Positions 7,813-31,962 of a DNA stretch of 64,000 nucleotides are shown here, piece after piece. The notes beneath the pieces were generated by a model that saw only the letters and a list, made by a program, of their open reading frames with translations, was not told the origin of the DNA and made no database searches. Every line of letters starts with the position of its first letter. Within the stretch, counting starts at the first letter, position 1. This stretch comes from Pavona decussata (Eukaryota), in NCBI GenBank assembly GCA_977016875.1, contig CDRNST010000060.1:2666001-2730000 (forward strand). The letters run 5' to 3'. The position numbers and the translations under genes were made by a program.

Positions 7813-10800
7813 CCCTATGGTTTTTGGACTAATTTTCATCCCAATACTATACACTATAGAATTTGGCCTAATTTTGACCACAATACTATACACTACGGTT
7901 TTTAGACTAATTTTCATCGTAATACTATAAACTATGGATTTTGGCCTAATTTTCATCGTAATTCTATACACTATGGATTTTGACCTAATTGTCATCGTAA
8001 TACTATACACTTTAGATTTTGGACACGTTTTCATCGTAATACTGAACACCATGAATTTTGGCCTAATTTTCATGATAATCCTATACACTATGGACTTTGG
8101 CCTTATTTTCATCATAATACTATACAGTATGGTTTTTAGACTAATTTTCATCCTAATACTATATACTATGGTTTATTAACCAATTTTCATCGTAATTCTA
8201 CACACTATAGATTTTGGTCTTATTTTTATCGTTATAGTTTACACTATGATTTTTGGACTAATTTTCATCGCAATACTATGCACTATGGACTTTGGCCTAA
8301 TTTTCATCGTAATTCTATACACTATGGATTTTGACCTAATTGTCATCGTAATACTATACACTTTAGATTTTGGCCTAATTTTCACTATGGATTTTGGCCT
8401 TACTTTCATCATAATACTAAACACTATGGATTATGCACTTATTTTCATCCTAATACTATAGTCTATGGATTTTGCTGTAATTTTCATGCAAAATACTATA
8501 CATTATGGATTTTGACCTAATTGTCATCGTAATACTATACACTATTTTTTTTTTAAACGTTTTATACATTTTATAAATGTATGATTTAATAATTTATGAT
8601 TTAATAAAATGTATAATACTATACACTATGGTTTTTAGACAAATTTTCATCCTAATACTATGTAATATTATACACTATGAATTTTGGCATAATCTTCATC
8701 CTAATACTACAAACTATGGACTTTTAAACTAGTTTTCATCTATATGCTATACACTACAGATATTGGCCTAATTTTCATTCTTATACTATACACTATGGAT
8801 TTTGGCTTAATTTTGATCATAATATTATAAACTGTATATTTTGGCCTTATTTTTATCGTAATTATATACAGTATGAATTTTGGCCTTACTTTCATCATAA
8901 TACTATACACTAAGAATTATGCACTTATTTTCATCCTAATACTATACACTATGGATTTTGGCCTAATTTTCATCATAATTCTATACACTATGAATTTTGG
9001 CTTAATTTTGATCGTAATACTAAACACTGTACATTTTGGCCTAATTTTCACCGTAAATATATACAGTATGGATTTTGGCCTTACTTTCATCATAATACTA
9101 TACACTATGGATTATGCACTGATTTTCATCCTAATACTATACTCTATGGATTTTTTCGTAATTTTCATGCAAATTCTATACATTATGGATTTTGACCTAA
9201 TTGTCATCATAATACTATACACTATGGCTTTTGGCATAATCTTCATCCTAATACTATAAACTATGGACTTGTGAACCAATTTTCATCTATATACTATACA
9301 CTACAGATATTGTCCTAGTGTGACAGTAGATTTTCCAACTTTCGCGGGAAATACACGGAACTGTAATGAAGCCTTAACAGGAACGCAGGGGGAAATTACA
9401 CTCAAACGGGAGCACTCGCTCGCAGGGAGAGACTGTCACTTCTCAAAGCGGTACCAGGGATCAAACCACGAACTGGATAGAACTTCAGTAAGGAAACGAG
9501 AACTTGGTCCAACAGAGCTTTATTCTGACTCACTTGTAATTCGAAAGAACATTGTACAACAAGGGCTTATATGTGCTTGTACATTAATTGTTGTTTACAA
9601 GGTGCTATACGTGAGTCAATAGAACTAAATGAAAAACTATTAAGAGCGGAACAGCGTCTTTGTAAGCTAACGAACTAAATTCTTAAGAGCGGAACCGCGG
9701 TCTTTTAACTAGAGAACTAAATTAAAATTGTCGCTCGGAATTCTAGATCGTGAGTCCAGCTTGAAAAACTAATTTCGGCGGCAAACGCCTTTCTGAATAC
9801 TCTAAATTACAACTTAGAAAATCTTATGAATCCTACGGCTAACAGCAGCTGCAAGTGAATATTTCCGGAGATAACAAGAACTTTTCATTAAGTAGATCAA
9901 CACGACTAACGAGAACCAATTCAAGTAGGAAATGACAGGCCAGCTGAATTTGCTAGTTTTTTAAATTAAACGTGTAGAAGCTCTCTACTTCTAAAGTAAC
10001 CGAAACAAGTTCCAATAAAAGTAATTTTAAGTTAATGAACTACAGAAAGTGATTGTTAGCTTAAGTTTAGTACAATACTTCCGAATCCTCAAGGGACAAA
10101 AGAAATGCTAATTTAGCTCTACAAGTTGTTTACATTCTGCTTCCGTTGGTTTTCTAAAGTTACAGAGAACAAGAAACAGTGAATATCTTAAAGCGAACTA
10201 ACTTCTTGCAGCGAAAGCGAATAAATAATTTGCAAGAAGACCCAACTCCTTTTTCCCTTTTTAAGATTAAATATGGTTGATTCACGGACAATTACCCGTG
10301 GCGACTAGCGGAAATCTAAAGCAAGCTATATATTTGATTATACTATGACTAATAAATTCTGTGCGAACATTTCTTGCCAAAATTGCCAAAGCCCCCGTAA
10401 CACTCACTATGGACCTTCGACACATTTTCATCATAATACTATACACTATGGAATTTAGAATATTTTTGATACTAATACTATACACTATGGATTTTCGCCT
10501 GATTTTCATCGTAATACCATAAACTATGGATTTTGTACTAATTTTTATCCTAAAACTATATACTGGATTTTGGCCTAATTTTAGTCGTAATACTAAACAC
10601 TGAATTTTGGCCTAATTTTCATCATAATACTATACACTTCGGTTTTAGACTAATTTTCATCATAATTCTATACACTATGGATTTTGGACTAATTTTCATC
10701 CTAAAACTATACACTATGGTTTTTGAACCAATTTTCATCCTAATACTTTACACTATGGACTTTGGCCTCATTTTCATTGTTATTCTATACACTATGGATT

Positions 10801-12725
10801 TTGACCTAATTGTCATCGTAATACTATACACTACAGATATTGGCCTAATTCTCATACTTATACTATACACTATGGATTTTGGCTCAATTTTGATCATAAT
10901 ATTATACACTGTATATTTTGGCCTTATTTTCATCTTAATAATTATATGCAGTATGAATTTTGGCCTTACTCTCATCATAATGCTTTACACTATGAATTAT
11001 GAACTTATTTTCATCCTAATACTATACACTATGGATTTTGGCCTAATTTTCATCATAATTCTATACACTACGGATTTTGGCTTAATTTGGATTGTAATAC
11101 TATAAACTATAGATTTTAGCCCTATTTTCATCATTATAGTTTACACTATGATTTTTGGACTAATTTTCATCGCAATACCATACACTATGGATTTTGGCCT
11201 AATTTTCATCATAATTCTATACACTATGGATTTTGGCCTTACTTTTATCATAATACTATACACTATGGATTATGCAATTATTTTCATCCTAATACTATAT
11301 TCTATGGATTTTTTCGTAATTTTCATGCAAATACTATACATTATAGATTTTGACCTCATTGTCATCGTAATATTATACCCTACCGATTTTGGACTAATTT
11401 TCATCCTAAAACTATACACTATGGATTTTAGACTAATTCTTATCATAATACTATGTAATACTATACACTATGGATTTTAACCTGATTTTTATTGTAGTAC
11501 TATACACTATGGATTAAGCACTATTTTTTATCCTACAACTACCCACTGGATTTTGGCCTAACTTTCATGATAATACTCTACACTATGGATTTTGGCCTTA
11601 TTTTCATCATAATACCATACACTACGGTTTTTGAACCAATTTTAAATCGTCATACTATACACTATAGATTTTGGCCTAATTTTCATCGTAATTTTATACA
11701 CTATGGATTTTGGCCTAACTTTCATGATAATACTCTACACCATGGATTTTGGCCTTATTTTCATCCTAATAGTATAATATATGGATTTTTTCGTAATTTT
11801 CATGCAAATACTATACATTATGGATTTTGACCTAATTTTCATCATAATACTATACACTACCGAACGGTTTTAGACTAATTTTCATCCTAAAACTATACAC
11901 TATGGTTTTTAGACTAATTCTCATCCTAATACTATGTAATACTATACACTTTGGATAAAAATTTTCATCCTAATACTATACACTATGGATTTTGGACACA
12001 TTTTCATCGTAATACTATATACACCATGGAATTTAGACTAATTTTTATCATAATACTATACACTGGATTTTGGCCTGATTTTCATCGTAATACTATACAC
12101 TATGGATTTCGCACTAATTTTTATCCTAAAACTATACACTGGATTTTGGCCTAATTTTCATCGTAATACTAAACACTATAAATTTTGGCCTAATTTTCAT
12201 GATGATACTATACACTACGGTTTTTAGACCAATTTTCATCATAATTCTATACACTATGGATTTTGAACTAATTTTCATTCTAATACTATACTCTATGGAT
12301 TTTGGTGTTATTTTCATCGTAATACATACTATGCACTGTGATTTTTGGACTAATTTTTATCATAATACTACACACAATAGATTTTGGCATAATTTCCATA
12401 AAAATACTATACACTATGGATTTTGACCTAATTTTAATCGTAATACTATACGCTATAGATGTTGGCCTAATTTTCATCGTGATACAATACACTGTGGATC
12501 TGAGACTTATTTCCATCCTAATACTATACACTGTCTATGGATTTTGGACTAATTTTCATCCTGATACTATTCAGTATGGTTTTTGCACTAATTTTCATGC
12601 TAATAATATACACTTTGGTTTTTGGACTAATTTTCATGCTTATAATATACACTATAGTTTCTGCCCTAATTTTCATCCTAATACTATACACTATAAAGAT
12701 TTTCGCATAATTTTCACAGTAATAG
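7813..12725. repeat. 39-bp tandem satellite array, interrupted by a solo LTR
   Basis: Consensus about ATACTATACACTATGGATTTTGGCCTAATTTTCATCGTA. The unit is a multiple of 3, which explains the 13-aa-repeat ORFs (MDFGLIFIIILYT / MKIRPKSIVYSIT). Confidence 0.95.
9319..10402 (-). mobile_element. Solo LTR (1084 bp) inserted in the satellite
   Basis: Unique sequence with TG...CA ends (TGTGAC / GTAACA, imperfect inverted). Minus-strand AATAAA about 200 bp from the 3' end. No coding domain seen. Confidence 0.7.
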
Positions 12726-14291: not shown

Positions 14292-14809
14292 TACCCCTGA
14301 TAACTAGCTTGGACTGTTCACCTTTACTCGGAAAGAAAGAGGTGTTTTGATTACCCAACGTAACTACTCGAACCAATCCAACACAATAGAACTCTCCCAA
14401 AAAAATTGGAGCGATCGAACCCAATCGAAGTTTGATTGAGTTCGATTAAGTTCGGTAGCCTAAGTTGGCATACATCCGATTAAAAATGATAACAGTAGTG
14501 GATCATAAAATGATGTTTCAGTAAAGCAACATCAATCTATGTTTGTTTCACCTAATTCTTTGTTGTTCTTGCATGATAAAAAAAGACTTTTCAAAACTCT
14601 TGTTTATTTCGACTGATGGTTTGCACTGTTCGATTAAGTTCAATTGGGTTTAATTGGGTTCTGAAATCGAATGCAATCGAACTCTCACACAATTTTTTTG
14701 GCTCCATTGTGTTTGATTGCTGAACTCAATCAAACCCAGTCGTTTGATTCGGTTTGATTGAGTTCGATTAAGTTCAATTACCGAACAGTTTGAGTAGTTT
14801 CATCGGGTG
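14292..14809. mobile_element. Degenerate TIR element rich in TTCGATT motifs
   Basis: TACCCCTGATAACTA / TAGTTTCATCGGGTG imperfect inverted ends; repeated GTTCGATT. A related fragment lies at ~52087-52146. Confidence 0.5.
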
Positions 14810-14835
14810 ATTGACACACCAGCAACCAATTCTAC

Positions 14836-17800
14836 CTGTCTGTCTTGATGTAATGTCGACAGTCCTCCCTCATTGATCAAATCTCTCCAAATTCTGCTCC
14901 ACACATCACAAGGTACAGACCAGTAGCAAATACCTACAGAAAGTAAACAGAAGAAAGATCATTATTTTTCTGTTATTAAGTTAACTTATGTGCAAGTCAA
15001 TCACAAGCCTGGTAAACTAGGGTTGCTCTTACTAGAAAGCACATGACTTGTATGAATAGAGTTTGCATGGCTCCAGCAACAAATGGGTTTGAATCACAAA
15101 ACTACCTCATTGTAACTTATTTTCACAGGACTGAATTGTTGCAATTTATGCAATGTTTTGGAAATTATTAAACTATGTTGTAAAGACCTGCAAAAAAAGT
15201 TATTGCAAACATATTTATGACTTGAAATTTAATTCCCTGCTACATGTATGAAATCCTTTAAGTAAATGGAAGTGAGATGGTGCAGTGTAATGTAAGATAG
15301 CGTTGTAGTGCTTTGTACATAATGCAAGTATTGTAAGTAGTGTAATTGTTAGTACTGCAAGTACAGTAAGCATTTATTGTAAACATTGTAAGAACTGTGT
15401 AATTTATCGCATGTAGTGTAAGCTGTGTTCACTATTAATAATTGTATTCTGTGTGTCACGTAAAGCTAATAAAAAAAAAATAGGCATACTCGGAAAAAGG
15501 AAATCTGAGTGCTCCTATCAGGAGTCGAACCTAAGACCTTCCGATTACTAGTTCGGATGCTCTACCACTAAGCTACAGGAGACTCATGGGAGCTAAGGCC
15601 TTTAAACTAGGTTCATGGGACACACATCCTGCATACTGCGAGGATTCAAATATCAATATGTGCCATATGTGCAATGAAATACATGTAAATTAATGTGATG
15701 GAATATTTTAAGCCTGGTGAAGAAATGATAATGATGTATTATTCAGTGAATGACAGGCATACTCGGAAAAAGGAAATCTGAGTGCTCCTATCAGGAGTTG
15801 AACCTAAGACCTTCCGATTACTAGTTCGGATGCTCTACCACTGAGCTACAGGAGACTCATGGGAGCTAAGGCCATTAAACTAGGTTCATGTGACAAACAT
15901 CCTGCATACTGCTAGGATTGGAATGTCAATGTGTGAAGTAGTAAGCAGAATGTTTGTCCCATGAACCTAGTTTAGTGGCCTTAGCTCCCACGAGTCTCCT
16001 GTAGCTCAGTGTTATAGCATCCAAACTAGTAATCAGAAGGTTCGACTCCTGATAGGAGCACTCGGATTTCCTTTTAAACAAGTATGCCTGTGTCATTCAC
16101 TGAATAATACATCATTCTCATTTATTCACCAGGCTTAAAATATTCCTGGACCATCACATTTATTTCAATGATCAATCATGTTCACGATTATGCTGTCAAT
16201 TTATTTAATAAGATTTTATTGCCTACTATAGCCAACTTCTCATGTTATAACAACCTTCATGGCTTGTGAGTTTTGTTTTGTTCAAAGCTTACAGCAACAA
16301 AAAAAGCAACCAATAGTTATTAGTTTGTTCGGAAATAAATTATTGGCAAGTCATCAATTAAACATAACAACATCGCCTCCAAATATTTGGTGATATACGG
16401 TACTCATGGTGAATATCTGTGGTGTTTCCATATGACTTTGTATAAATTATGCAATCGTATGAGGCCAATTAGAACTAAGGATTAATTTTTGCGCAATTTT
16501 CAAAGTTTTCGCAAATTGCCTGAGTCGCACAGTGATAAGGGCAATTTGCAAAAACTTTGTGAAAATTAATCTTTAATTCTATGAGGACTCGAGGACTCAT
16601 TGCAATTACGTTTTTATAACATAGAGGGCAAAATTTTCTTAAAACTAACAGTCACACCCTTCCCAGAGTAAAAACACTCATCCATAAGCAAAACAAACAG
16701 TCAAACAATTCACCCGTTTCTTAGCATACAAAACAGACAAAACGAGAAAAGTCGATTGTTATATACAAGTAATTAAGAGAACATACAAGTTTAATTCATG
16801 AGCAAACTAACAACAACTAAACCAAATGTTAGGCATCAATAATTTATTGATTCACCTGCACTGTGAAGCTTTCTACCACTTGAAAATCACACAAACACAG
16901 ATGGATAAAAATAGCAAACTGTGGGTTCAAAGGAGGAACTTTCAGAGTAATTTCTTCCACTGAATTTAACCTGCTCCTTCCTCCCATCAAAAGGGAACTG
17001 TTATTATTGTTTGGTTATCGTTTGTTGGAAAAAGCCATAGCGAGGTGAAAGTACTTGGTCGCAGCCATGAATGATTTCAGTTTTTCAACGAAACAAATCC
17101 GATCAAGTTTTTAGCTTTTGTCCCAAATAATCTTTTGCTGTTTCTTGTAAGAAACAAAAGTTCCCCTTTAGGAATTTCCTTTCTAGCTGTGGCACCTGAT
17201 TTCCAAGTATTTTTGGCACAAACAATCCTGTTTAAATAGTCAAACTCCAAAAAAACTGAAAGAAGTTGTTGTTGTTGTGATTGATCGACTGCACAAAATG
17301 AAGAAACTGACTAAATGTTGAAATGGCATACGAAGCCAATAAGGAGCAAGTATTTCTGCTGCTTGACCAATCAGGAGCAAGTAATTTTGCCCTCGGTGAA
17401 AGGAAAATTAAGAAAATATGCCCTCCGTTTCAACCAATCAGCATCCAGTAATTTTGCCCTAATGTTATAAAGGTCAGAAAATGCTGAAGTATGCATTATG
17501 CAGTTCCATACAAAAATCCATACCCACCCCATGGAAGGTCATTTGAAATTCGTTGGAGAAGGGGGTCTTAAAAGTAAAAAATTTTAGAAGCAAACTATGG
17601 AGCTAAACTGGAATTTCCTGGGGGAAGGGGGGTGCAAAACAAAAAACCTTCCATGTGGGGAGTATGGATATTTCCTGGAACTGTACTTTGTAGTTTCAAT
17701 GCCAGGTCATTGAGATTAAAATAATGTTTCTATTTATACACATCAGATGATTACAATATTATGACTAGCATAGCTGAATGGCGGAAGCGGGGGGGGGGGG

Positions 17801-18551: not shown

Positions 18552-19619
18552 CAGGGCTGTCAACTCTCCCGGATAATCCGGGAGTCTCCAGATTTTGAAC
18601 TGTATCTCCCGGTCTCCATATTTATGCTTGTAATCTCCAGATTTTGAGCCGTATCTTCTGCTCCCCAGATTTATGTCTGTAATCTCCCGGATAATTGACG
18701 AAATTTGCGATTTGCCGTAGACTCGACATTCTGACAAGAAAATCTGAAATGTTAAGCGTTGTTTCTGGTGCTGTTTAATTTCCTCCCTTCGCCGCCCCCC
18801 CCCCCCCCCCCCCCTCCCCACACTGAACGGGTGTCTAGAAAACTCAGACCTAGAAAACTCAGACCTCAGACCTCAGACCTAGAAAACTCAGACCCCCCAA
18901 TTCTGGAAAACTCAGACCTAGAAAACTCAGACCCCCCAATTCTGGAAAACTCAGACCCCCTTCAAAACTCAGAAAAATAAATAAACGTGAAGAGAGAATA
19001 AAGCAAAAACAGAAACATGAAACCACCAAACCGCGCCAAAATATCATGTGCTGTTCATGTCGCGTGACCGTCACACAACGCCGCTCAAGCCACAGCCGAC
19101 ATGACAGTGTAAAATGATTTTTTAACACAATATGTCGATTACAAACACTTAACATCGATTTTTTTGTTAGCACCAAACTGACACAATTTTAGTCCTTGAG
19201 ATATTTAGGGGTATCATGATTTGGATTTTGCTCTATTCTCTCTTCGAATAAAAAGCCAATTTCGTGTCAGAGACGACAGGAACGGAGTGTTGTTATCTTT
19301 CCCGTTATCTTGCAATAATAAAAGGCAGACACTGTATAGCGTACAGTATAAAAAAATGAATTCCATTTTCCAACCACGTTTATTTCTTTTTCCGAGTTTT
19401 GTTGTTTGAAGGGGGTCTGAGTTTTCTAGGTCTGAGTTTTCCAGAATTGGGGGGTCTGAGTTTTCTAGGTCTGAGGTCTGAGGTCTGAGTTTTCTAGACA
19501 CCCCACACTGAACCCGTGAATTAGGCCTTGATTCGACGCCTCTGTAAGGTGCTTCGTTATTTCTGGCCGGGGAGGTCATATTCTCCATATTTGAAGACGT
19601 GTGAGGTCAGACAGCCCTG
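18552..19619. mobile_element. Non-autonomous TIR element with 6-bp TSD (hAT6-like)
   Basis: TIR CAGGGCTGTC / GACAGCCCTG; AGTAAG at 18546-18551 and 19620-19625. Confidence 0.85.
18829..19503. mobile_element. Nested Mutator-like MITE with long repetitive TIRs
   Basis: GGGTGTCTAGAAAACTCAGACC... / ...GGTCTGAGTTTTCTAGACACCC; CACACTGAAC duplicated at 18819-18828 and 19504-19513 (9-10-bp TSD). Confidence 0.85.
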
Positions 19620-19775
19620 AGTAAGGGACCAATTTTTTAAACCGAAAATTGCAGATAAATGACACACGTCAAGATTCGTCATATATGAGGAATATATCAA
19701 ATTTTGTCCACAAGTGCTGCACTGAGTCACGCAACTTCAGTATTCATGTGGCAATAGCTTGTCCCAGAGGAGAAA

Positions 19776-21365
19776 ATGCATCTTGTGCTGGTACACGGCT
19801 ATCCGCTCGGCGGAACTGGATCCAGTGTCTACACAGCGAACATTGCTAAATCATGGAAGAATCAGGGCCATGCGGTCACTGTAATTTGCCAGGATCCGTT
19901 CGCCGATCGCCTTGATTTCGTCGATGAATTTATCGTCGGAACCGACAAGATTCCCTCCTCAGCCCCTAAAGCCGGAACTTTACGAGTTGTGGTACCAGAC
20001 ATTAATGGCCTTCTACTGGTGTATTGGTACGATCTATGCGAAGGATATGAAGTTAAAACCATGGTGAACTGCTCTTTGGAGGAGATTGAAGCAAATATAG
20101 AAGGAACAGTGGCAGGATTGAAGAAAGTTATTGCTCAAGGCGTCGATCGAATCCTTGCGAATCACGCAATCCTGAGCCCCGTGATTACTAAACGCGCCAC
20201 AGAAGGGACCGGGGTTCCATACGACGTCAAAATACACGGCAGCTCCATCATTTTCTCGATCAAAAACCGCCAGGAGTTAAGGCGGTACGCGGTGGAGGGT
20301 ATCAAGAACTGCCAGAAGCTCATCGTGGGAGCAAAGTACATGGCTGGTTTCGTGGAAGAGACGTTCGAATTGGAGAAGGAAGATATAGGTCTAGTGAGTA
20401 AGACTGTGATTATCCCCCCGGGAATGGACCCGGAAGTGTTTCAATTCGGGGGCTTTGTAAAAGACCAACAAGAAGCCTTCTTAAAAAGCGTGACGGATTT
20501 CATCAAGAGAAAGCCTGACGGGAGACGAGCGGACAAGATTTCGCTTCCCGATAACAACAACCACAACTCAAGCGACTTGAACAAAGCACTGGAACGTGTC
20601 GTGGAGTCGTACGACCTCCGAGCGGCCGATTCTGACCTCTTCGAGCGCTGGATTCCATTTGAGGAAGATGAACCCATCATTTGCTATTTTGGCAAGTTCC
20701 AAGAAACCAAAGGCGTGGGAGAGATTCTAATGGCTTTTCCAGCCATCCTGAAGAAGATTCCCAAAGCAAGACTGCTGCTCATAGGGTATGGAAGCCGCCG
20801 TGAGCACTTAGAAGGCATGCTGGCAGCCATGGTTCAGGGAAGGTTTGAAGCTTTCAAAGCCTATGCGGGGGCGGGAAATTTCGTGGACATCCCACCGGCT
20901 GCAGAGAATTTTTTTCACCAGATTTCTCCGGGCAGAGTTACAAGGACGGGTTTTCTGGAGCATGCTCAGTTGAAGGAGATTCTTCCTTTATGCAGCCTGA
21001 CCATTACAGCAAGCAAAGCCCTGGAAGCCTTTGGCATGGTGTCAGTGGAGGCCATGTCTGCTGGAGTCTTGCCGCTGTGTCACGACCACACAGGAATCTC
21101 CGATGTTATTCGAGCCGTAAAAGAGGTGGACCCGGAGCTGGCTGATATTATGCGCTTGGAGATACGTCCCGGTGGCTTACACGACGTCGCAGATGGTGCG
21201 TTCCTCGTGGAAAACCTACCGAATAAAGTGGAGCGCGCTCTTCATTTCCTGTACCCGAATGGCTTTGCTGACCACAGTAAGAGGCGTGCACTGTCGGCCA
21301 AGCTCAGGGATATTGCCGTGGCCAAGTTCTCCTGGGATATTATTTGCAAGAAGATTTTAGAATAA
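19776..21365 (+). CDS. Glycosyltransferase family 4 (GT-B fold), intronless, bacterial-like
   Basis: 529-aa ORF. N-terminal HGYPLGGTGSSVY...GHAVTVIC, KIHGS, IIPPGMD, YFGKFQETKG, the E-x7-E motif EAFGMVSVE and a C-terminal FSW are all GT4 hallmarks. Confidence 0.92.
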   Translation: MHLVLVHGYPLGGTGSSVYTANIAKSWKNQGHAVTVICQDPFADRLDFVDEFIVGTDKIPSSAPKAGTLRVVVPDINGLLLVYWYDLCEGYEVKTMVNCSLEEIEANIEGTVAGLKKVIAQGVDRILANHAILSPVITKRATEGTGVPYDVKIHGSSIIFSIKNRQELRRYAVEGIKNCQKLIVGAKYMAGFVEETFELEKEDIGLVSKTVIIPPGMDPEVFQFGGFVKDQQEAFLKSVTDFIKRKPDGRRADKISLPDNNNHNSSDLNKALERVVESYDLRAADSDLFERWIPFEEDEPIICYFGKFQETKGVGEILMAFPAILKKIPKARLLLIGYGSRREHLEGMLAAMVQGRFEAFKAYAGAGNFVDIPPAAENFFHQISPGRVTRTGFLEHAQLKEILPLCSLTITASKALEAFGMVSVEAMSAGVLPLCHDHTGISDVIRAVKEVDPELADIMRLEIRPGGLHDVADGAFLVENLPNKVERALHFLYPNGFADHSKRRALSAKLRDIAVAKFSWDIICKKILE

Positions 21366-21834
21366 TGAATGGAAATGATACTTAAATTCTTTCAAATAAT
21401 CGTGAACTTAACTTGAGAACAGATAAGATTTTTCGAGATAGACTTTTGTCAGTAGAGTCTCTTGGTAGAGTTTTGTCTTGTTACAAATTCGACACAGTGA
21501 TACACAGTAAAACGTGCTTGCAGAAGAAAACCAGTAGGGGAGCAGTTCCCATAAAACCGTTATCAATCGATTATCGAAAAACGAAGGCAAACTAATTCCC
21601 CTGGTTAATCACGAGAAACACAAACAGCGCAATGAACCAATCAGAATTCGAAGCAAATAACGGTGCGGAGTGTGGTTACTTTTCTTCAGATGGTGGGTCA
21701 CGTGATCGGTGCGAACATTGAGTATGTCGATCGCGCGGTTCTCGATTCTCACATCACGTGACACCATGTTTAAAAATTAGTAATAATCAAGGATTAGAGA
21801 GTACGTTCGATGTCACCAGGCTCTCTCTCCAGTG

Positions 21835-22107
21835 AAATATAGTCCTTTGAGATGGGAGATGGCTCAGCAGTATCCCGGATACACCGTCAGACAACATAAC
21901 ATCATTATTGATGTCCTGGGCGGATGGTCAAGAGATGTGGATGCATCTATGAGGGAGCTTTTCGGAGGTCGAGGAGAAAATATCCTAAGGAAAATGCAGG
22001 AAGCTGTCCTCTCGAACTCATTGAACATATCAAGAACTTTTAAAATTATGACTAGATAGTTAAGGAACTCACTTTCATGATTTTTAGGGGTTACTAGTCG
22101 CTTAGTT

Positions 22108-24538: not shown

Positions 24539-27500
24539 TCAAGGCATTCTTCTGTACTCTTTACGAGTTGGACACAAGCAAATTGTTGTAGTCAGTATCC
24601 CAATAGACAGACCGATCAAAAAAATCGGCCATAACAAGCAGTGGAACACTATAGCCTTGTAATGTTCTTTGCTTTGATTCTCCAACACCACGGCATCCGG
24701 GTCTTTAGGGTCACTGTAGCACGTGATCGCCATCCCAGGTCTCCCTCTTTGCAGCCGATAAGTTTCCAGCTCTCGTGTAGAGAGTATCCCTGAATTGCAG
24801 ATGTTTGCATGTACCTCGTAAGAGCACTAGAAGGGATATTTAAAAACAGCTTGTAAGACAGTAGCCTCTTGTGTAGTTGTTTTTGGCGAGTCATATTATT
24901 ACCATCCTTACCATGACTGGCCAGTCAGATAGCACCAAATATATAACTTTTTTCATTTCATTTTATAGAGCGGTTTCCAATTGAGTGTCGTAAAACCAAA
25001 ACCAAAGTAATTACTCTGGCCAATCGCAACAGATGTAAACAACACAACGAACCAATCAGAAATCGAAGCAAATACATGTAACTGGCGCCAAGCGCGGGAA
25101 AACGCGTGCGGCCAAAACACGATTGGTTTTGGTTTTGTTTCTCATTGGTTGAGAAAGTACTAGTGGCGCGAGTTTTGTTAACCAAGCACAGAGTGTAGTA
25201 ATGCAAAATCAAAGCAAACGCAAAATTACTTTCGACACTCAATTGAAAACCGCTCTATAAGATCAATTTAAATGATGTGATGATTTATGGTGTGATCCCA
25301 ACAGAGCTACATATCAGTTTCTCTCTTAGGGTACGTTGTTGGGGGGCTTAGAATTCCGCTAGAAGGAATACACGAAAAACATCGTACTTGTTTTCCTTTG
25401 AGACCAATACCTTTCTCGGAATGAGCAGAATAGTATTCTGTTCATTGTGACCTCGATAGCAGAACCAACAGAGTACCAGTTTGTTTGCCATGGGAAGGTT
25501 TTCGGTTAGTAATGGGAACAGGCACTATTATAATACGGTGGCCGATAGGTGCCATCCCAAAATACACCCATTATAATTTTGTATCTCTTGATAATTTTTG
25601 TATCCCGTGGTAACTTTTTATCCCATAATAAAATTTTCTCACGAGATAATTTGTCTCATCCCGTGATATAATTTTTTCCCCGAGGTAATTTTTTATCCCG
25701 TATTATAATTTTCATTCCGAGGTAATTTTTATCTAGCGATAATATTTTAATCCCGTGATAATTTTTCCAGTATCTCGTGATATTTTTTTTATCCCGTGAT
25801 AACATGACTTAATCCAGCAAACATGCCGTCACGTCTGTAATGGCTACCATCAATCGTTTACGAAGAAGCCCGTTCGGTTTTGCCATCATACATAATAAAA
25901 GTGTTGACAGGCCTAACACGACTTCTACATTTACATGAACGTCAGGACGTTGCTTTGTAATTTTGCTCTAACGAGCATATCTTTTGAGGACCTGTCTTCC
26001 TATAATAGGATTAAGAGAAAGTTCCTTACATGCATCACGGGATGAGAAATCCGGCACGGGATAAAAAAAATTATGACGGGATAAAAAAATTGTCACGGGA
26101 TAAAAAAAATATCACGGGATAAAAAAATCATCACGGGATAAAAAAAATTGTCACAGGATAATGAAATCATCTCGGGATAAAAATTATCACGAGATAAAAA
26201 ATATCACGGGATGAAACAAAATCACGAGGAAACAAAATATCACGGAATAAAAGTTATTGAGAATGGCATTGCTATGGGCCACCGTACAGTTTTGTTTTTT
26301 GGGGAGCTGGTATTGTGTTGATTTTGTTAACGGTCCCAAATCCTTAAACCGGAAAGTAGATAGGCAGAATTTTGAAGGGGAGGTTAATAGGAGGCCTACA
26401 GCGTATGCACAGGCCCTCTCGAACTCCACAAACAACTACACAAGAATTTCTGTAACAATTCAAATCAGTGAATAAACAAACAAAAAAGCAAAAATCAATT
26501 TGAGAGGAAATGCCTGACTGAATTAGATAAGATTGAATATTTGAAGTTTGTTTGTAGCTAGTTCAGTCCCAACATTCAGCAGCTACTCACAGCAAAATAT
26601 CATCTGCATTCGTTTGCCACGTGCTTCCTGTTTACGCTTTCGTTTTTTTTTTCTTGATCACATTATACCTTACTCGGTAAGGGCTAAATTAAGGCTGATG
26701 GCTGATAGCGTGTTACTATTTCAACCTTAATCTTATGCATGACCTCATTCACAAAGTGGCCACCTGTCAAAAGTATGTAGATCTGTCAGAGATCCTAGCA
26801 AACAGAAAGAAACTTCTAACTCCATGTTAAAGCAAAGCTTATTTTGAGACAATACGAATGAACAAAAATAAGTCTCAAGGCTAAGGTTTGCAATTGGATA
26901 AAATCGCGAGTCTTCATCATCAGTTGATGAACTGGTCAGGATAGTTGCTCTTAGCTCCTTATAAAGCATATTCCGTCAACTGCTCCCGAGAACTGAGTGA
27001 ACACATTTTATGAAATGATTATACACCAAATCAAAACTTTACTTTTCTTGTCAAAGATTTTCGAGTCTTACTAACTGGCCATGGGATATGTATCACACTG
27101 GAGCGAAAATAATTATAACTCATGCGTCATAAAAAAGTACTGCTTTGCGACCCGCTTCCCATCTATTCCACGATCAGCATTTTTGTTGTGTTAGAAACAT
27201 ATTTTTCATATTTCGACAGTCTTTTGTGCAACTGGACTTAACTGATGTTTCGAATTGATTAAAGGCCAAAAAGTGCCAAAAAAAAACTGGTAATAAGAAC
27301 TTACTGTCAATTAAAATTAGTGAAAGGGGCGCGAGTTAATCTATAAAACTGCTGAGTTACTTTCATTAGCATATTCGATTCTCTCGTAAGGGCTTCGCCC
27401 ATATAATCACTCGAACCACCGTGAAAAGCATGCGGGAAACGATGTCACTCTTCTAGTCAATAGCTTTAATTTTAATATTTTCCATCGGGTGACGAACAGA

Positions 27501-28107
27501 CCCAAAGTTAATATCATCTTGCACTAAGAAATAGCAGCCGAGAGCTGGAAGGTAAAGCTTCTCCGTCTTAAAAGGCCACACTCCAAATTTCAACCAACGA
27601 CTCGAAATGTAGTGTTACTTTACTTAGAATAACATTCAATGAACACGAATGAATTGAAGTTTTTGCTTTTCACCCGAAAATATTTAGTACAAATACTGTC
27701 AAAAATTACGTGTAAAACAAAACAAATGTTCTTACCTTGTCGTTCAGGTGATAGACGTCTTTTCGGAGCAAATGTTCGTATTGTTTATCAGTGGAAAAGT
27801 TGAACTTCTCGTTGATGACCTCTTCCTTGACATGTTCTCCACCACATTGTACGTAAACTTTTAGGCATGGAACCTCTTTAACATTTCCGTCACTGGTACA
27901 ACTGCAATTCCCGCTTTCACATGAAATATCGCTGTGTGTTACTCTGCAAGCTGTTTTTTTGAAGCTTAACCCTTTATGAGCTGGCCACACTTTGGTTACG
28001 GACAAGACGCCTAAGGAGAACATTCCTGTAAAGAACATCAAAATCGCCAAGGATATCGTAAATTTGAGGTAGCGAGCATACATCTTGTCTGACAGATCGA
28101 TCAGCAT
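24539..28107 (-). CDS. Calcium-activated (BK) potassium channel beta-subunit-like protein B, 2 exons, 219 aa
   Basis: Exons 28107-27736 (GTAAGA donor) and 24826-24539 (CTAG acceptor), phase 0. Two TM segments flank a Cys-rich loop with PCLKVYV, K|CSY, CYSDP and HCLLWP, typical of the CaKB/KCNMB family. Confidence 0.85.
24965..25258. mobile_element. MITE; same family at ~38764-39349 and ~55250-55833
   Basis: ATAGAGCGGTTTCCAATTGAGTGTCG / CGACACTCAATTGAAAACCGCTCTAT inverted ends. Confidence 0.85.
25534..26286. mobile_element. Foldback-like TIR element with inverted arrays of a ~20-bp ATCCCGTGATA motif
   Basis: TACGGTGGCC / GGCCACCGTA ends. The left arm repeats ATCCCGTG and the right arm repeats CACGGGAT. 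Confidence 0.8.
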
Positions 28108-29618: not shown

Positions 29619-31962
29619 TCAAAGATCCTGATTTAGCGACGTAATCGAAACACCTGGTAATTTCTCATAACCGTATCGGCTTGGCGAAGAATAGTAGCAC
29701 GTTGTTGTTGCTATGACAGCAACGCCCAGCAATACAATGGCCAGCGGCCACACCACATTTTGCAGGACTAGCTTGTTGTAGCTTTCTTTTGAAGCTTTCT
29801 GGCGAACGACTTGATCTGGATTTTTGGGGTTATAATAACATTTAAGGGATGATCCATGAGAAAGGCGAGGCTTGACACCATGGCCAGTTTTGTCCACGCA
29901 ATCGTCTGGCTCAAAAGTGCACTGATAAATAAAGAACATGAAAGCGTTTTTTCATTTTAATATTTTTTAAGAAGATTTTCTACAATACCTCATTTTCCCT
30001 CATGAACTCCGAGATTTAGAGAAATTGGAAGAGCACAGTATTTAGGCTGAGAGGAAGGGGGTGGGGTGAAGTCCTACTCCACAACTGTCTAAGAACAAAC
30101 AAATCCGGTTAACACACGCGATGTGAACGCGATGTGAAAAGTCTGATGGGAAGCGAGGGTAGGGGGGGGGGGGGGGGAAAGCGATGGAATTTAAGTTTAA
30201 TACTCCAAAATAATTCAAGTTACTCGGCTCCCCTTGAAATTTCCATTCTGTTTTCGAACAAAAGGATTTTTTTTTTAATCCTTTACGTGAAATTACTTTT
30301 GAGAGTTTCTTTGCCCCGAATTCAAAGCCAAAAAAGAAAAAAGAAAACAAAAGAAAGAAAGAAAAGAAACTGACAAACAAAAAGACCTGTAACCATGCAC
30401 GTTAACGGGTTTTTGAGAATGTGCGTGACTCCATGTGTCACGTTCACATTCCATGTTCACGCTCATCCGCCCCTTATTTGGACCGTGAAGAGCCTGGTCA
30501 GACCCACCCTGTGCAACACAATTAAAATTACCAAACAGGCGTTAGCTTGTTCACGGTACTTCTGTATTCCCATGACAAATGTTTTTTTTTTCAGCAGAAA
30601 CGGATACTGAAGTAATACCACTACAACAAAGAGATGCGAGTGCTTCAACTCTGTTGACGAAACCAATCATCCGTTTCTACTCCCCTCCCCCCCCTCCCCA
30701 TTGCCACCGACGCAGCACCAAAGTTTATTTAGAAAATAATCCTCTCATCTATTTCTTTTCTCATAAGATCGTTCAAAGTCTTCAGAGCGTGTACAGGATG
30801 AAAATCGCGGGAGTTTGCATGAGAACGATAACGGTCCAAAGAGGTACCAGACCAAAGGGAAGTTAAAGCTGAAACGGAAGTCACGCTCAAAGTGTACACT
30901 CATCCATGCAACTCAAGATTGGTCAGCATTTCGTATTTTTTTGTTTCTTACTCAATCATTATTTTTACTTTCCCTTTGTAATTACCATTAAAAACCAATC
31001 TGTAGCAATTGCAAAAAGTATGTCTCCGCGCTGTGATCTGAGCTGGCATTTAGGGATTTCACTCTGAAAATAGCTTCGTGTTTGGGTAAATTTTAGATTT
31101 ATTTTGAGGACAACATGTGTAGTGAGGGCAATACTCAACATCAATAGGCAGCAAAGGACCAGATATTAATGTTACAAACAGTGGAAAAGTACAATTCTAC
31201 CAAAATTTTCGAAATGTTGTCCAAATATATTGCCCAGCGCTTAGACATCTTCTTATTTTCTTCTGCCGGCGCACTGGCTAAACATTTATGCATTGACTTA
31301 GTAAAACAAAACATTAAAACTTCGAGAATTAAAGTACCAATCACAAAAGCGCTCTGTTGTTTTTTTCTTTGAACAATGACTGTATGCGAAAATCTTGCCG
31401 GGGAGCTTTGTGCGCCCTCTAAAGCCCTTGAATAAACAGAACCACAGTCATTTAAATACTAGCCTTAATTTGAACTGAAACATATGTAACACAATTCAGG
31501 GTCAACTACCATCCAATCTCGTTAACAGCAAATTCAACATTCTATTACTTTTAAGAAGTTCTGGTGTAATGATTTCAGCAAGGTAATCAAAATTTACTGG
31601 AATGTGAAGCGGGGAATTCAATACTACAGAATCGAACACGGTACCTGTTTATCGAGGCTTTGAAAATCTTTAAGCAACAAACGTGGCTGCGCTCCTTCCA
31701 GGGTTCCATTCCTTTGCGCTTCGTTTCCACACAAGACATAAATTCTTAAACACGGAAAGCTGGAATCATCGCCTTTGTTTTGCGAGCATTTCGTTTTCAT
31801 GTCCACATCACTAGACGCTATTGTACAGTTTATTTCTTTTAAGCTTTGCTCCTCGAGAGCGGGAAAAACACGGTGAAATGCAACAGCGACAAAACACACC
31901 GAACCGGCTAGGAATATTCCGACTCCAAGCAAAAGAGGTACTTGGAGCTTTGTGCAGCGCAT
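29619..31962 (-). CDS. Calcium-activated (BK) potassium channel beta-subunit-like protein A, 2 exons, 206 aa
   Basis: Exons 31962-31645 (CAG|GT) and 29921-29619 (TCAG acceptor), phase 0. Motifs FPCLRIYV, Q|CTFEP, CYYNP, VVWP and two TM helices. Intron position is the same as in gene B. Confidence 0.85.

Follow-up and report, generated by a model that had tools for sequence, protein, structure and literature searches.

How does a coral come to carry an intronless glycosyltransferase gene of bacterial appearance, and is the copy at hand the working one? The question arises from a 64,000-nucleotide stretch of the Pavona decussata genome (NCBI GenBank assembly GCA_977016875.1, contig CDRNST010000060.1, positions 2,666,001 to 2,730,000 of the forward strand), hereafter the window, in which an open reading frame (ORF) for a family 4 glycosyltransferase (GT4) occupies positions 19776..21365 of the plus strand. 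A preliminary annotation made from the sequence alone, referred to here as the original prediction, had presented it as a candidate for horizontal gene transfer (HGT) from bacteria. The explanation that accounts best for the evidence presented below is that of a genuine coral GT4 gene, descended from an ancient bacterial transfer, held under strong purifying selection and represented in the window by a young duplicate; taken as a whole, we consider this account probable, though well short of assured.

The ORF begins with an ATG, encodes 529 amino acids followed by a stop codon, and is intact within a single exon, with an in-frame stop located seven codons 5' of the start. It is more than three times as long as the next longest ORF in the window (155 aa), and at a stop probability of 0.066 per codon a frame of this length is expected by chance about 3e-11 times per window. 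The C-terminal half of the product matches the Pfam models PF00534 (Glycos_transf_1, 67.2 bits; cut-off 26.4) and PF13692 (Glyco_trans_1_4, 49.4 bits; cut-off 27), and the N-terminal GT4-type Pfam models give weak scores under threshold. The protein belongs to CAZy family GT4/Glycos_transf_1, with matches in all 65 aligned family members. Invariant across these 65 animal, bacterial and other sequences are H7-G8, G15-S16, N129-H130, H154-G155-S156, K312-G313, E417 and E425, and the donor-site motifs are all kept in the window protein, as E417-x7-E425 and, for G-[KR]-x4-K-G, as K307...K312-G313. Two Rossmann-like domains with a C-terminal helix that crosses back correspond to the GT-B fold. A Kyte-Doolittle search for transmembrane segments found none (highest 19-residue mean 1.32), nor was there a signal peptide, the protein opening directly at Rossmann strand beta-1. 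On these points, the intact single-exon frame with GT4 motifs and the lack of signal or anchor segments, the original prediction was correct. To judge from its sequence, the window ORF thus encodes a soluble and cytosolic GT-B/GT4 glycosyltransferase of the retaining type; a nucleoside diphosphate (NDP) sugar donor and the retention of anomeric configuration would follow from GT4 family membership alone. The subfamily to which the window copy belongs is common to hexacorals, sponges and rare bacteria, and is uncharacterised.

A bacterial-type protein encoded in a single exon, with a GC content of 50% against about 38% in the flanks, could be the signature of bacterial contamination or of a chimeric assembly join. 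The window, which holds 138 N, is however part of a 6.7-Mb contig (C60) in a 602-Mb genome, and both copies of the gene found in this genome lie on that one contig. About 190-300 bp past the stop codon, in the 3' flank, is a fragment of a dispersed host interspersed repeat (21551..21659), which falls inside the duplicated block described below; its family has at least 1,397 first-look candidates, of which the 40 that were scored lie on many contigs at 78-84% identity. The original prediction had already argued from a host repeat, citing a further copy at 24965; that copy (24965-25074) is a weak match at just 74%, and the argument is made stronger by the dispersed family. The gene is flanked by animal genes, as had also been claimed, and by host elements; many other cnidarians and sponges have orthologues on Mb-scale contigs or chromosomes, and the Nematostella copy has an intron. 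The 6.7-Mb contig, the host repeat within the duplicated block and the animal neighbours show that the GT gene is truly part of the host genome. Neither contamination nor a chimeric join is a credible explanation, and both can be regarded as effectively refuted, their residual chance being negligible.

A word search yielded 192 full-length relatives. Full-length orthologues occur throughout Scleractinia and Actiniaria at 55-94% identity, and the named matches come from Oculina, Desmophyllum, Exaiptasia, Actinostola and Nematostella (56-78% identity) and from Lingula (47%). A demosponge clade of 38 clusters shows 49-55% identity to the query and includes, by cluster look-ups, Halichondria panicea XP_064396931.1 and Amphimedon queenslandica A0A1X7VLC7, and Hydractinia symbiolongicarpus XP_057307461.1 belongs to the sister cluster of that of Lingula; the taxonomy of unnamed metagenomic sequences was taken from their context and from named cluster-mates. 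In sponges the GT gene is a single intact ORF on Mb-scale contigs, where the surrounding ORFs are sparse, resemble exons and encode SH3, kinase, Ig/fn3 and IGFBP domains. Tara Oceans plankton contributes a small clade, some members of which are fused to a PH domain (PF00169). The PH-domain fusions and plankton clusters are P0066 and P0070 (677 aa), with P0065 and P0109 as related clusters. One member of a plankton cluster comes from a catalogue of marine eukaryote transcripts, a hint that the gene is expressed in small eukaryotes and that the protein is recruited to membranes.

The bacterial relatives are proteins of about 518 aa, 46-50% identical to the query and encoded on ordinary bacterial contigs. 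This core family was found in about 24 of some 185,000 species (one genome per species), all of them uncultured and represented by metagenome-assembled genomes, and spread over about eight phyla: Desulfobacterales and other 'delta' lineages, Calditrichota, Acidobacteriota, Victivallales, Gemmatimonadota, Planctomycetota and Ignavibacteriota. The core bacterial clade consists of uncultured bacteria of marine or sediment type. Around it lies an outer shell of proteins of the same length and architecture at 28-36% identity, mostly from Solirubrobacterales/Thermoleophilia (Actinomycetota); the ESM Atlas returned Actinomycetota GT4 clusters only, and no taxon labels for the animal clades. When 1.84 billion representatives were scanned with HMMER, 133 proteins reached E<=1e-30, about five of the clusters being full-length core members, and the core (at least 42% identity) was set off sharply from the shell. 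The family is a small, well-separated subfamily. Among the same 1.84 billion representatives, nearly all well-sampled eukaryotic groups are without the gene, the taxonomy of not every weak match having been checked, and the named eukaryotic carriers are limited to Hexacorallia, Demospongiae, Hydractinia and Lingula. The proposal of a bacterial-type GT4 is upheld; the protein resembles none of the curated GT4 subfamilies, and its nearest non-eukaryotic relatives are bacterial.

How old is the gene in corals? The GT gene is intronless in the window and in the sponge and coral loci examined, in agreement with the original prediction; the exception is the Nematostella vectensis orthologue (L014:10001-12024, OW051996.1), which is nested in a dynein heavy-chain gene and is interrupted after codon 359 by a phase 0 intron of 410 nt with canonical GT...AG borders and 35% GC, against 50% in the exons. 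This intron is the only one seen in the family; its removal gives exactly the database protein P0031, whose alignment to conserved family sequence runs through the junction. Between coral genera the ratio of nonsynonymous to synonymous divergence (dN/dS) is 0.07-0.08 at a dS of about 0.87. Synteny was sought across coral genera between the window and a contig of another coral (L012), and the coding sequence (CDS) alone aligned. In this other coral (86% identity; L011 and L012, ENA ERZ25071797) the gene is present as tandem copies at 10001-11593 and about 14431-16286, 3-4.7 kb apart, with a dS of 0.12 and a dN/dS of 0.19, adjoining thrombospondin type-1 (TSP1) repeat genes; the two near-identical contigs with the tandem pair are probably haplotypes. 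Because the tree within Hexacorallia follows taxonomy (see below), because of the Nematostella intron and because of the low dN/dS between genera, any transfer must be hundreds of millions of years old. A recent or lineage-specific coral acquisition was accordingly rejected, the gene being common to Scleractinia, Actiniaria, sponges and others. The HGT proposal is thus retained in one half and abandoned in the other: a horizontal origin is the most economical reading, given bacterial relatives at 46-50% identity, whereas acquisition in the coral lineage is not supported, in view of the orthologues in Hexacorallia, sponges, Hydractinia and Lingula.

Phylogenies were inferred in two IQ-TREE runs (LG+C20, quick search, SH-aLRT support, no bootstraps), both rooted on the shell. 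In both trees all non-bacterial sequences formed one clade (SH-aLRT 99), in which Hexacorallia (98-99) and Porifera (100) were each monophyletic and sisters of one another (86-93). Within Hexacorallia the tree follows taxonomy, with Actiniaria separate from Scleractinia and two scleractinian groups. Between phyla it departs from the species tree, Hydractinia being placed with Lingula and sponges with hexacorals, and from this mismatch and the patchiness it follows that plain vertical inheritance in Metazoa is not shown. The original prediction had set against its own HGT hypothesis the case of orthologues widespread in animals and tracking the species tree; the outcome is divided, in that many animals have the gene and taxonomy is followed in Hexacorallia, but the species tree is not followed between phyla. 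Short branches (0.09 and 0.24 changes per site, like the depth within cnidarians) connect the bacterial clade with the eukaryotic one. Taken with the bacterial outgroup and the very patchy eukaryotic distribution, they favour one ancient bacterium-to-eukaryote transfer, and such a transfer followed by vertical descent, with losses or secondary spread, fits best. Three marks of horizontal acquisition are present: the gene is integrated, its closest outgroups are prokaryotic, and it is patchy among eukaryotes. A bacterial GT4 gene would have entered eukaryotes once, before the split of Scleractinia and Actiniaria and possibly as long ago as the early animals, and would then have descended vertically under strong purifying selection with many losses, perhaps with secondary eukaryote-to-eukaryote or virus-mediated spread.

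Several features of the trees weigh against so simple a course. The bacterial core is the sister of the non-bacterial clade in one tree (bacterial clade SH-aLRT 89), and in the other it is weakly paraphyletic around it (85 and 38). An approximately unbiased (AU) test of a single animal clade gave a delta lnL of 18 and p = 0.040, a borderline rejection that involves long, compositionally odd branches and a grouping already seen broken in an earlier tree. More than one entry into animals is possible, and the direction of transfer is not proven.

Hexacorals with sponges, on the one hand, and Hydractinia with Lingula, on the other, may have received the gene separately, through giant viruses or from other eukaryotes. 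Lingula and Hydractinia group together (100) beside a virus-like pair (95), apart from Hexacorallia and Porifera (93), in line with the AU result and with the very patchy occurrence across animal phyla. The family member P0127 (47% identical to the query) is encoded at 10001-11590 of L097 (JGI 3300055526, Ga0535637_0000356). This contig of 45.1 kb has 30-35% GC and is crowded with ORFs that match no family; it also has a match to the Capsid_N model of nucleocytoplasmic large DNA viruses (NCLDV; 30.6 bits, cut-off 24), a weak poxvirus D13 match, a fused DHFR-TS and ORFs for an F-box protein and for 2OG-Fe(II) oxygenases. A giant virus, or an insertion of one, is its most likely source, though it is one contig only; the contig of a further sequence, P0129, is too short for its viral nature to be judged. 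Against separate entries, the AU p-value is borderline and the Lingula, Hydractinia and AT-rich virus-like sequences are long or compositionally odd; a scan of IMG/VR with the family alignment, P0127 and P0129 returned no relative, so that the viral link comes down to a single contig, and a virus could equally have taken the gene from its host. We therefore regard several entries as rather unlikely, and less so than the next reading, in which an old eukaryotic gene descended vertically from the first eukaryotes with massive loss, or the rare bacterial copies were taken from eukaryotes. The reciprocal sister relationship of the eukaryotic and bacterial core clades in one rooted tree would suit such a history, as would the rarity of the bacterial core and its scatter over about eight uncultured phyla, which itself resembles lateral spread. 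It is nevertheless improbable, as the great majority of the next-closest relatives, alike in length and architecture, are bacterial (mainly Solirubrobacterales/Thermoleophilia), most of the eukaryotes examined have an intronless gene, and almost all well-sampled eukaryotic groups among the 1.84 billion representatives lack it. A single ancient transfer from bacteria remains the preferred history.

The window gene itself has a much shorter one. A six-frame search of the whole genome with the window protein found only two copies at E<=1e-3, the window gene and one further copy at C60:6137732-6139318, on the opposite strand, 3.45 Mb away and 95% identical; of the canonical animal GT4s (ALG2, ALG11, PIGA, GTDC1 and GLT1D1), the coral's own ALG/PIGA-type genes would thus not be close, although the sensitivity of this search is limited by exon-by-exon matching. 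The second copy, like the length of the contig, the host repeat and the animal genes, agrees with the original prediction that the gene is not a contaminant. The two loci share a gene-sized duplicated block, 19681..21830 on the plus strand of the window and C60:6137258-6139426 in inverted orientation (blastn 94.5% over 2,180 bp), made up of about 95 bp of 5' sequence, the CDS and about 465 bp of 3' sequence, plus a 120-bp homologous patch. Past the block, blastn detected no homology of the two loci in either flank. The host repeat at 21551..21659 is also present at the paralogue (96% identical), so its insertion predates the duplication. Contig L013, which belongs to a closely related species, runs parallel to the 6.137-Mb locus, flanks included, and matches the window only from 19681; the 6.137-Mb locus is therefore ancestral, and the window copy is a young, gene-sized dispersed duplicate of this older locus. 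The original prediction missed that the window holds the younger and faster-evolving of two genomic copies.

About 180 bp upstream of the duplication boundary is a foldback element resembling a miniature inverted-repeat transposable element (18850..19497), with arms of 87 nt at 18850-18936 and 19411-19497 that are 100% complementary. The arms are made of short CTCAGACC-type repeats and are spaced 474 nt. On the other side, a 75-aa ORF fragment (21832..22059, plus strand) starts exactly where homology to the paralogue stops and looks by eye like mobile-element debris. The block is transcript-sized, yet a poly(A) tract was not seen at its 3' end; the data neither favour nor exclude that the window copy arose as a retrocopy.

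Comparison of the two copies, which differ at 46 nucleotides, gave a dN of 0.020 and a dS of 0.062. When the changes were polarised with two outgroups, 18 nonsynonymous and 12 synonymous substitutions fell on the window branch, and 6 nonsynonymous and 10 synonymous on the parent branch; the nonsynonymous excess on the window branch has a binomial p of 0.023, and dN/dS on this branch is about 0.44. Clearly derived amino-acid changes number 13 in the window copy versus 2 in the parent. Among them are N17S and Y88C, at sites identical in all 64 other aligned sequences, and the window copy has also changed L10, which is identical in the nine closest coral sequences compared. Copied from the older C60 locus, the window duplicate has changed about three times more in amino acids than its parent.

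These observations raise the possibility that the window copy is a non-functional or decaying duplicate, its frame still open but constraint or expression lost, and that the working gene is the C60:6.137 Mb copy. The window locus is the derived one, sits between the foldback element and the apparent mobile-element debris, received only about 95 bp of upstream sequence, and has accumulated threefold more nonsynonymous change than its parent at a similar level of synonymous change, including at the otherwise identical positions N17, Y88 and L10. A canonical AATAAA/ATTAAA signal was not found within 1 kb 3' of the window copy, which counts against a working gene in the window. The contigs recovered when transcripts were sought in Logan/ENA (L013, L095, L096) are all colinear genomic DNA and not transcripts. 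On the other hand, the whole 529-codon frame is intact, the branch dN/dS is below 1, and the catalytic-type motifs E-x7-E, K312 and H-G-S are unaltered. The contrast in nonsynonymous and synonymous changes between the two branches is not significant (Fisher p = 0.22), which leaves the signal of relaxed constraint modest and tells against decay. Decay of the window copy is thus a tentative reading that we think doubtful; an intact copy under relaxed or altered constraint is suggested by the data, though not proven.

What would the enzyme do? Its C-terminal Rossmann domain would bind an NDP-hexose through the G-K-x4-K-G and E-x7-E motifs, and the sugar would then be moved, with its anomeric configuration retained, to an acceptor bound in the N-terminal domain; this acceptor is most likely a small metabolite, soluble and possibly anionic. 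The nearest folds are those of BshA, MshA, GlgM and sucrose-phosphate synthase (SPS), all retaining GT4 enzymes and most with small anionic acceptors; by analogy with them, the 'small glycoside or osmolyte' that the original prediction had proposed as product would be a reasonable candidate.

None of these known enzymes is a close counterpart. The SPS and SPS-like GT4 structures (Thermosynechococcus Tll1590, 6kih; Leishmania major 8vrf, 9dcm and 8uag) are the top Foldseek matches (E 6e-18 to 2e-16), and SPS also gives the best sequence match in the PDB, at a profile E of 1e-12; in the alignment with the family profile, the G-[KR]-x4-K-G and E-x7-E motifs correspond residue for residue to those of Tll1590, and the Leishmania proteins are likewise bacterial-type soluble GT4 enzymes in a eukaryote. 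Identity to SPS is however only 14-20%, the sequences align at the motif regions only, and the coral protein is without an SPS-type phosphatase partner or domain. BshA (UDP-GlcNAc:L-malate N-acetylglucosaminyltransferase, GT4; PDB 2jjm, 3mbo, 5d00 and 6n1x) is 18-19% identical and about 150 residues shorter, lacking the insertions specific to the coral protein's family (about 130-180 residues), which include a beta-rich, hairpin-containing segment at about 51-95 and a helical one at about 222-295. To our knowledge, a bacillithiol pathway is not expected in animals. MshA (UDP-GlcNAc:inositol-phosphate transferase) and GlgM (alpha-maltose-1-phosphate synthase), both actinobacterial GT4 enzymes, are 13-17% identical and shorter, with no family-model match.

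Assignment of a small-molecule acceptor meets with several difficulties. Structural scores differ little among GT4 enzymes, with glycolipid, lipopolysaccharide and glycogen synthases close behind the best matches. Among the NCBIfam equivalogs, none of 16 weak matches nears its cut-off, BshA TIGR03999 reaching 41 bits against 273.7 and GlgA TIGR02095 25.9 against 328.45, so that the protein falls outside both. The gene neighbours of the bacterial core loci, 24 in number, stay the same only inside Calditrichota or Victivallales and indicate no pathway. Those of 42 shell loci, a cytochrome c oxidase operon and an amidase, represent housekeeping synteny within Solirubrobacterales and likewise give no hint of a pathway. 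In one bacterial locus (L006:9655-13244, ERZ27247866 k141_294060) genes for a methyltransferase, a GT2 and a 618-aa protein without family match come after the GT4 gene, in the same orientation. This gene order is the only operon-like context seen, and is not conserved elsewhere.

The acceptor might therefore be macromolecular or lipid (a glucan primer, a glycolipid or a protein) instead of a small metabolite. Such an acceptor, for which the closely following synthases speak, seems to us somewhat less than likely, as the protein lacks a signal peptide and any segment for membrane association, most bacterial loci have the gene on its own, and the top-ranked structures of both searches use small anionic acceptors.

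Many family members bear a weak precomputed label for PF20706 ('GT4-conflict'), a family of the same clan and fold class. Against this model the window protein reaches 20 bits (cut-off 26), over profile positions 272-335 of 385, and thus does not belong to it; the best family member reaches E 1.4e-10, and the score is always below that for PF00534. The weak label is explained by clan overlap. A defence or conflict-system reading was rejected, with PF20706 under its cut-off and no PADLOC match. True members of PF20706 are present elsewhere in this coral genome, which has large tandem arrays of GT group-1 domains, with at least 92 scored matches among 189 candidates, on C64 (about 1.45-3.18 Mb), C91 (0.02-0.64 Mb), C162, C289, C251, C170, C415, C49 and C106. 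Full-length PF20706 ORFs sampled from them, on the minus strand at L103:4621-5829 and L104:4519-5763 (403 and 415 aa; 294 and 291 bits), are 33% identical to the window protein over 51 residues, in the E-x7-E stretch only, and represent a different subfamily. NACHT-associated GT group-1 domains have been reported for Acropora (PMC4083563), and the coral PF20706 arrays are probably these NACHT/NB-ARC-associated GT domains. Adjoining the GT4-conflict ORF of L104 is an intact 435-aa ORF (L104:7872-9176, plus strand; C91, about 119.9-121.2 kb) with a copia-type long terminal repeat retrotransposon gag, a zinc knuckle and a Pol beta-barrel.

The animal genes next to the window copy are two exon-sized ORFs on the minus strand that match CaKB (PF03185), the metazoan BK-channel beta-subunit, at 27709..28107 (29.8 bits, cut-off 25.1) and 31627..31962 (26.7 bits, same cut-off). 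Their tandem arrangement represents a local duplication of an animal ion-channel accessory gene.

A literature search found no description of the gene or of its LOC identifiers, and in RefSeq and UniProt the animal proteins are entered as uncharacterised. The main texts of the reports on the HGT set of Amphimedon (PMC4784904) and on coral HGT candidates (PMC4878875) mention no glycosyltransferase, their supplements lying outside the search. The published genes are likewise single-domain, mostly intronless genes for bacterial-type enzymes in early-branching animal genomes; the GT gene, though, is common to sponges and cnidarians and not lineage-specific. The kinds involved are thus known, both a GT4 enzyme and a prokaryote-type gene in an early-branching animal; the subfamily is uncharacterised, and its sharing between sponges and cnidarians is unusual.

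The corrected picture is that of an old resident gene with a young duplicate, and not of a fresh coral HGT or of contamination. If true, it would place this gene among the few prokaryote-type enzyme genes that are common to sponges and cnidarians and are under very strong purifying selection, and would make it a marker for how early animals or their unicellular forebears acquired bacterial metabolism, and for whether giant viruses carried such genes from one marine eukaryote to another. More speculatively, and with low confidence, a single bacterial small-molecule glycosyltransferase may have reached eukaryotes by the time animals arose or earlier, with giant viruses among its carriers, and may have persisted under strong constraint for over half a billion years in no other groups than sessile or benthic marine lineages (sponges, hexacorals, one hydroid and one brachiopod) and some plankton. 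There it would make a cytosolic alpha-glycoside that sponge and coral chemistry have in common, for instance a compatible solute or some modified metabolite. As a single tractable protein, it could reveal an unrecognised glycoside in coral and sponge tissue.

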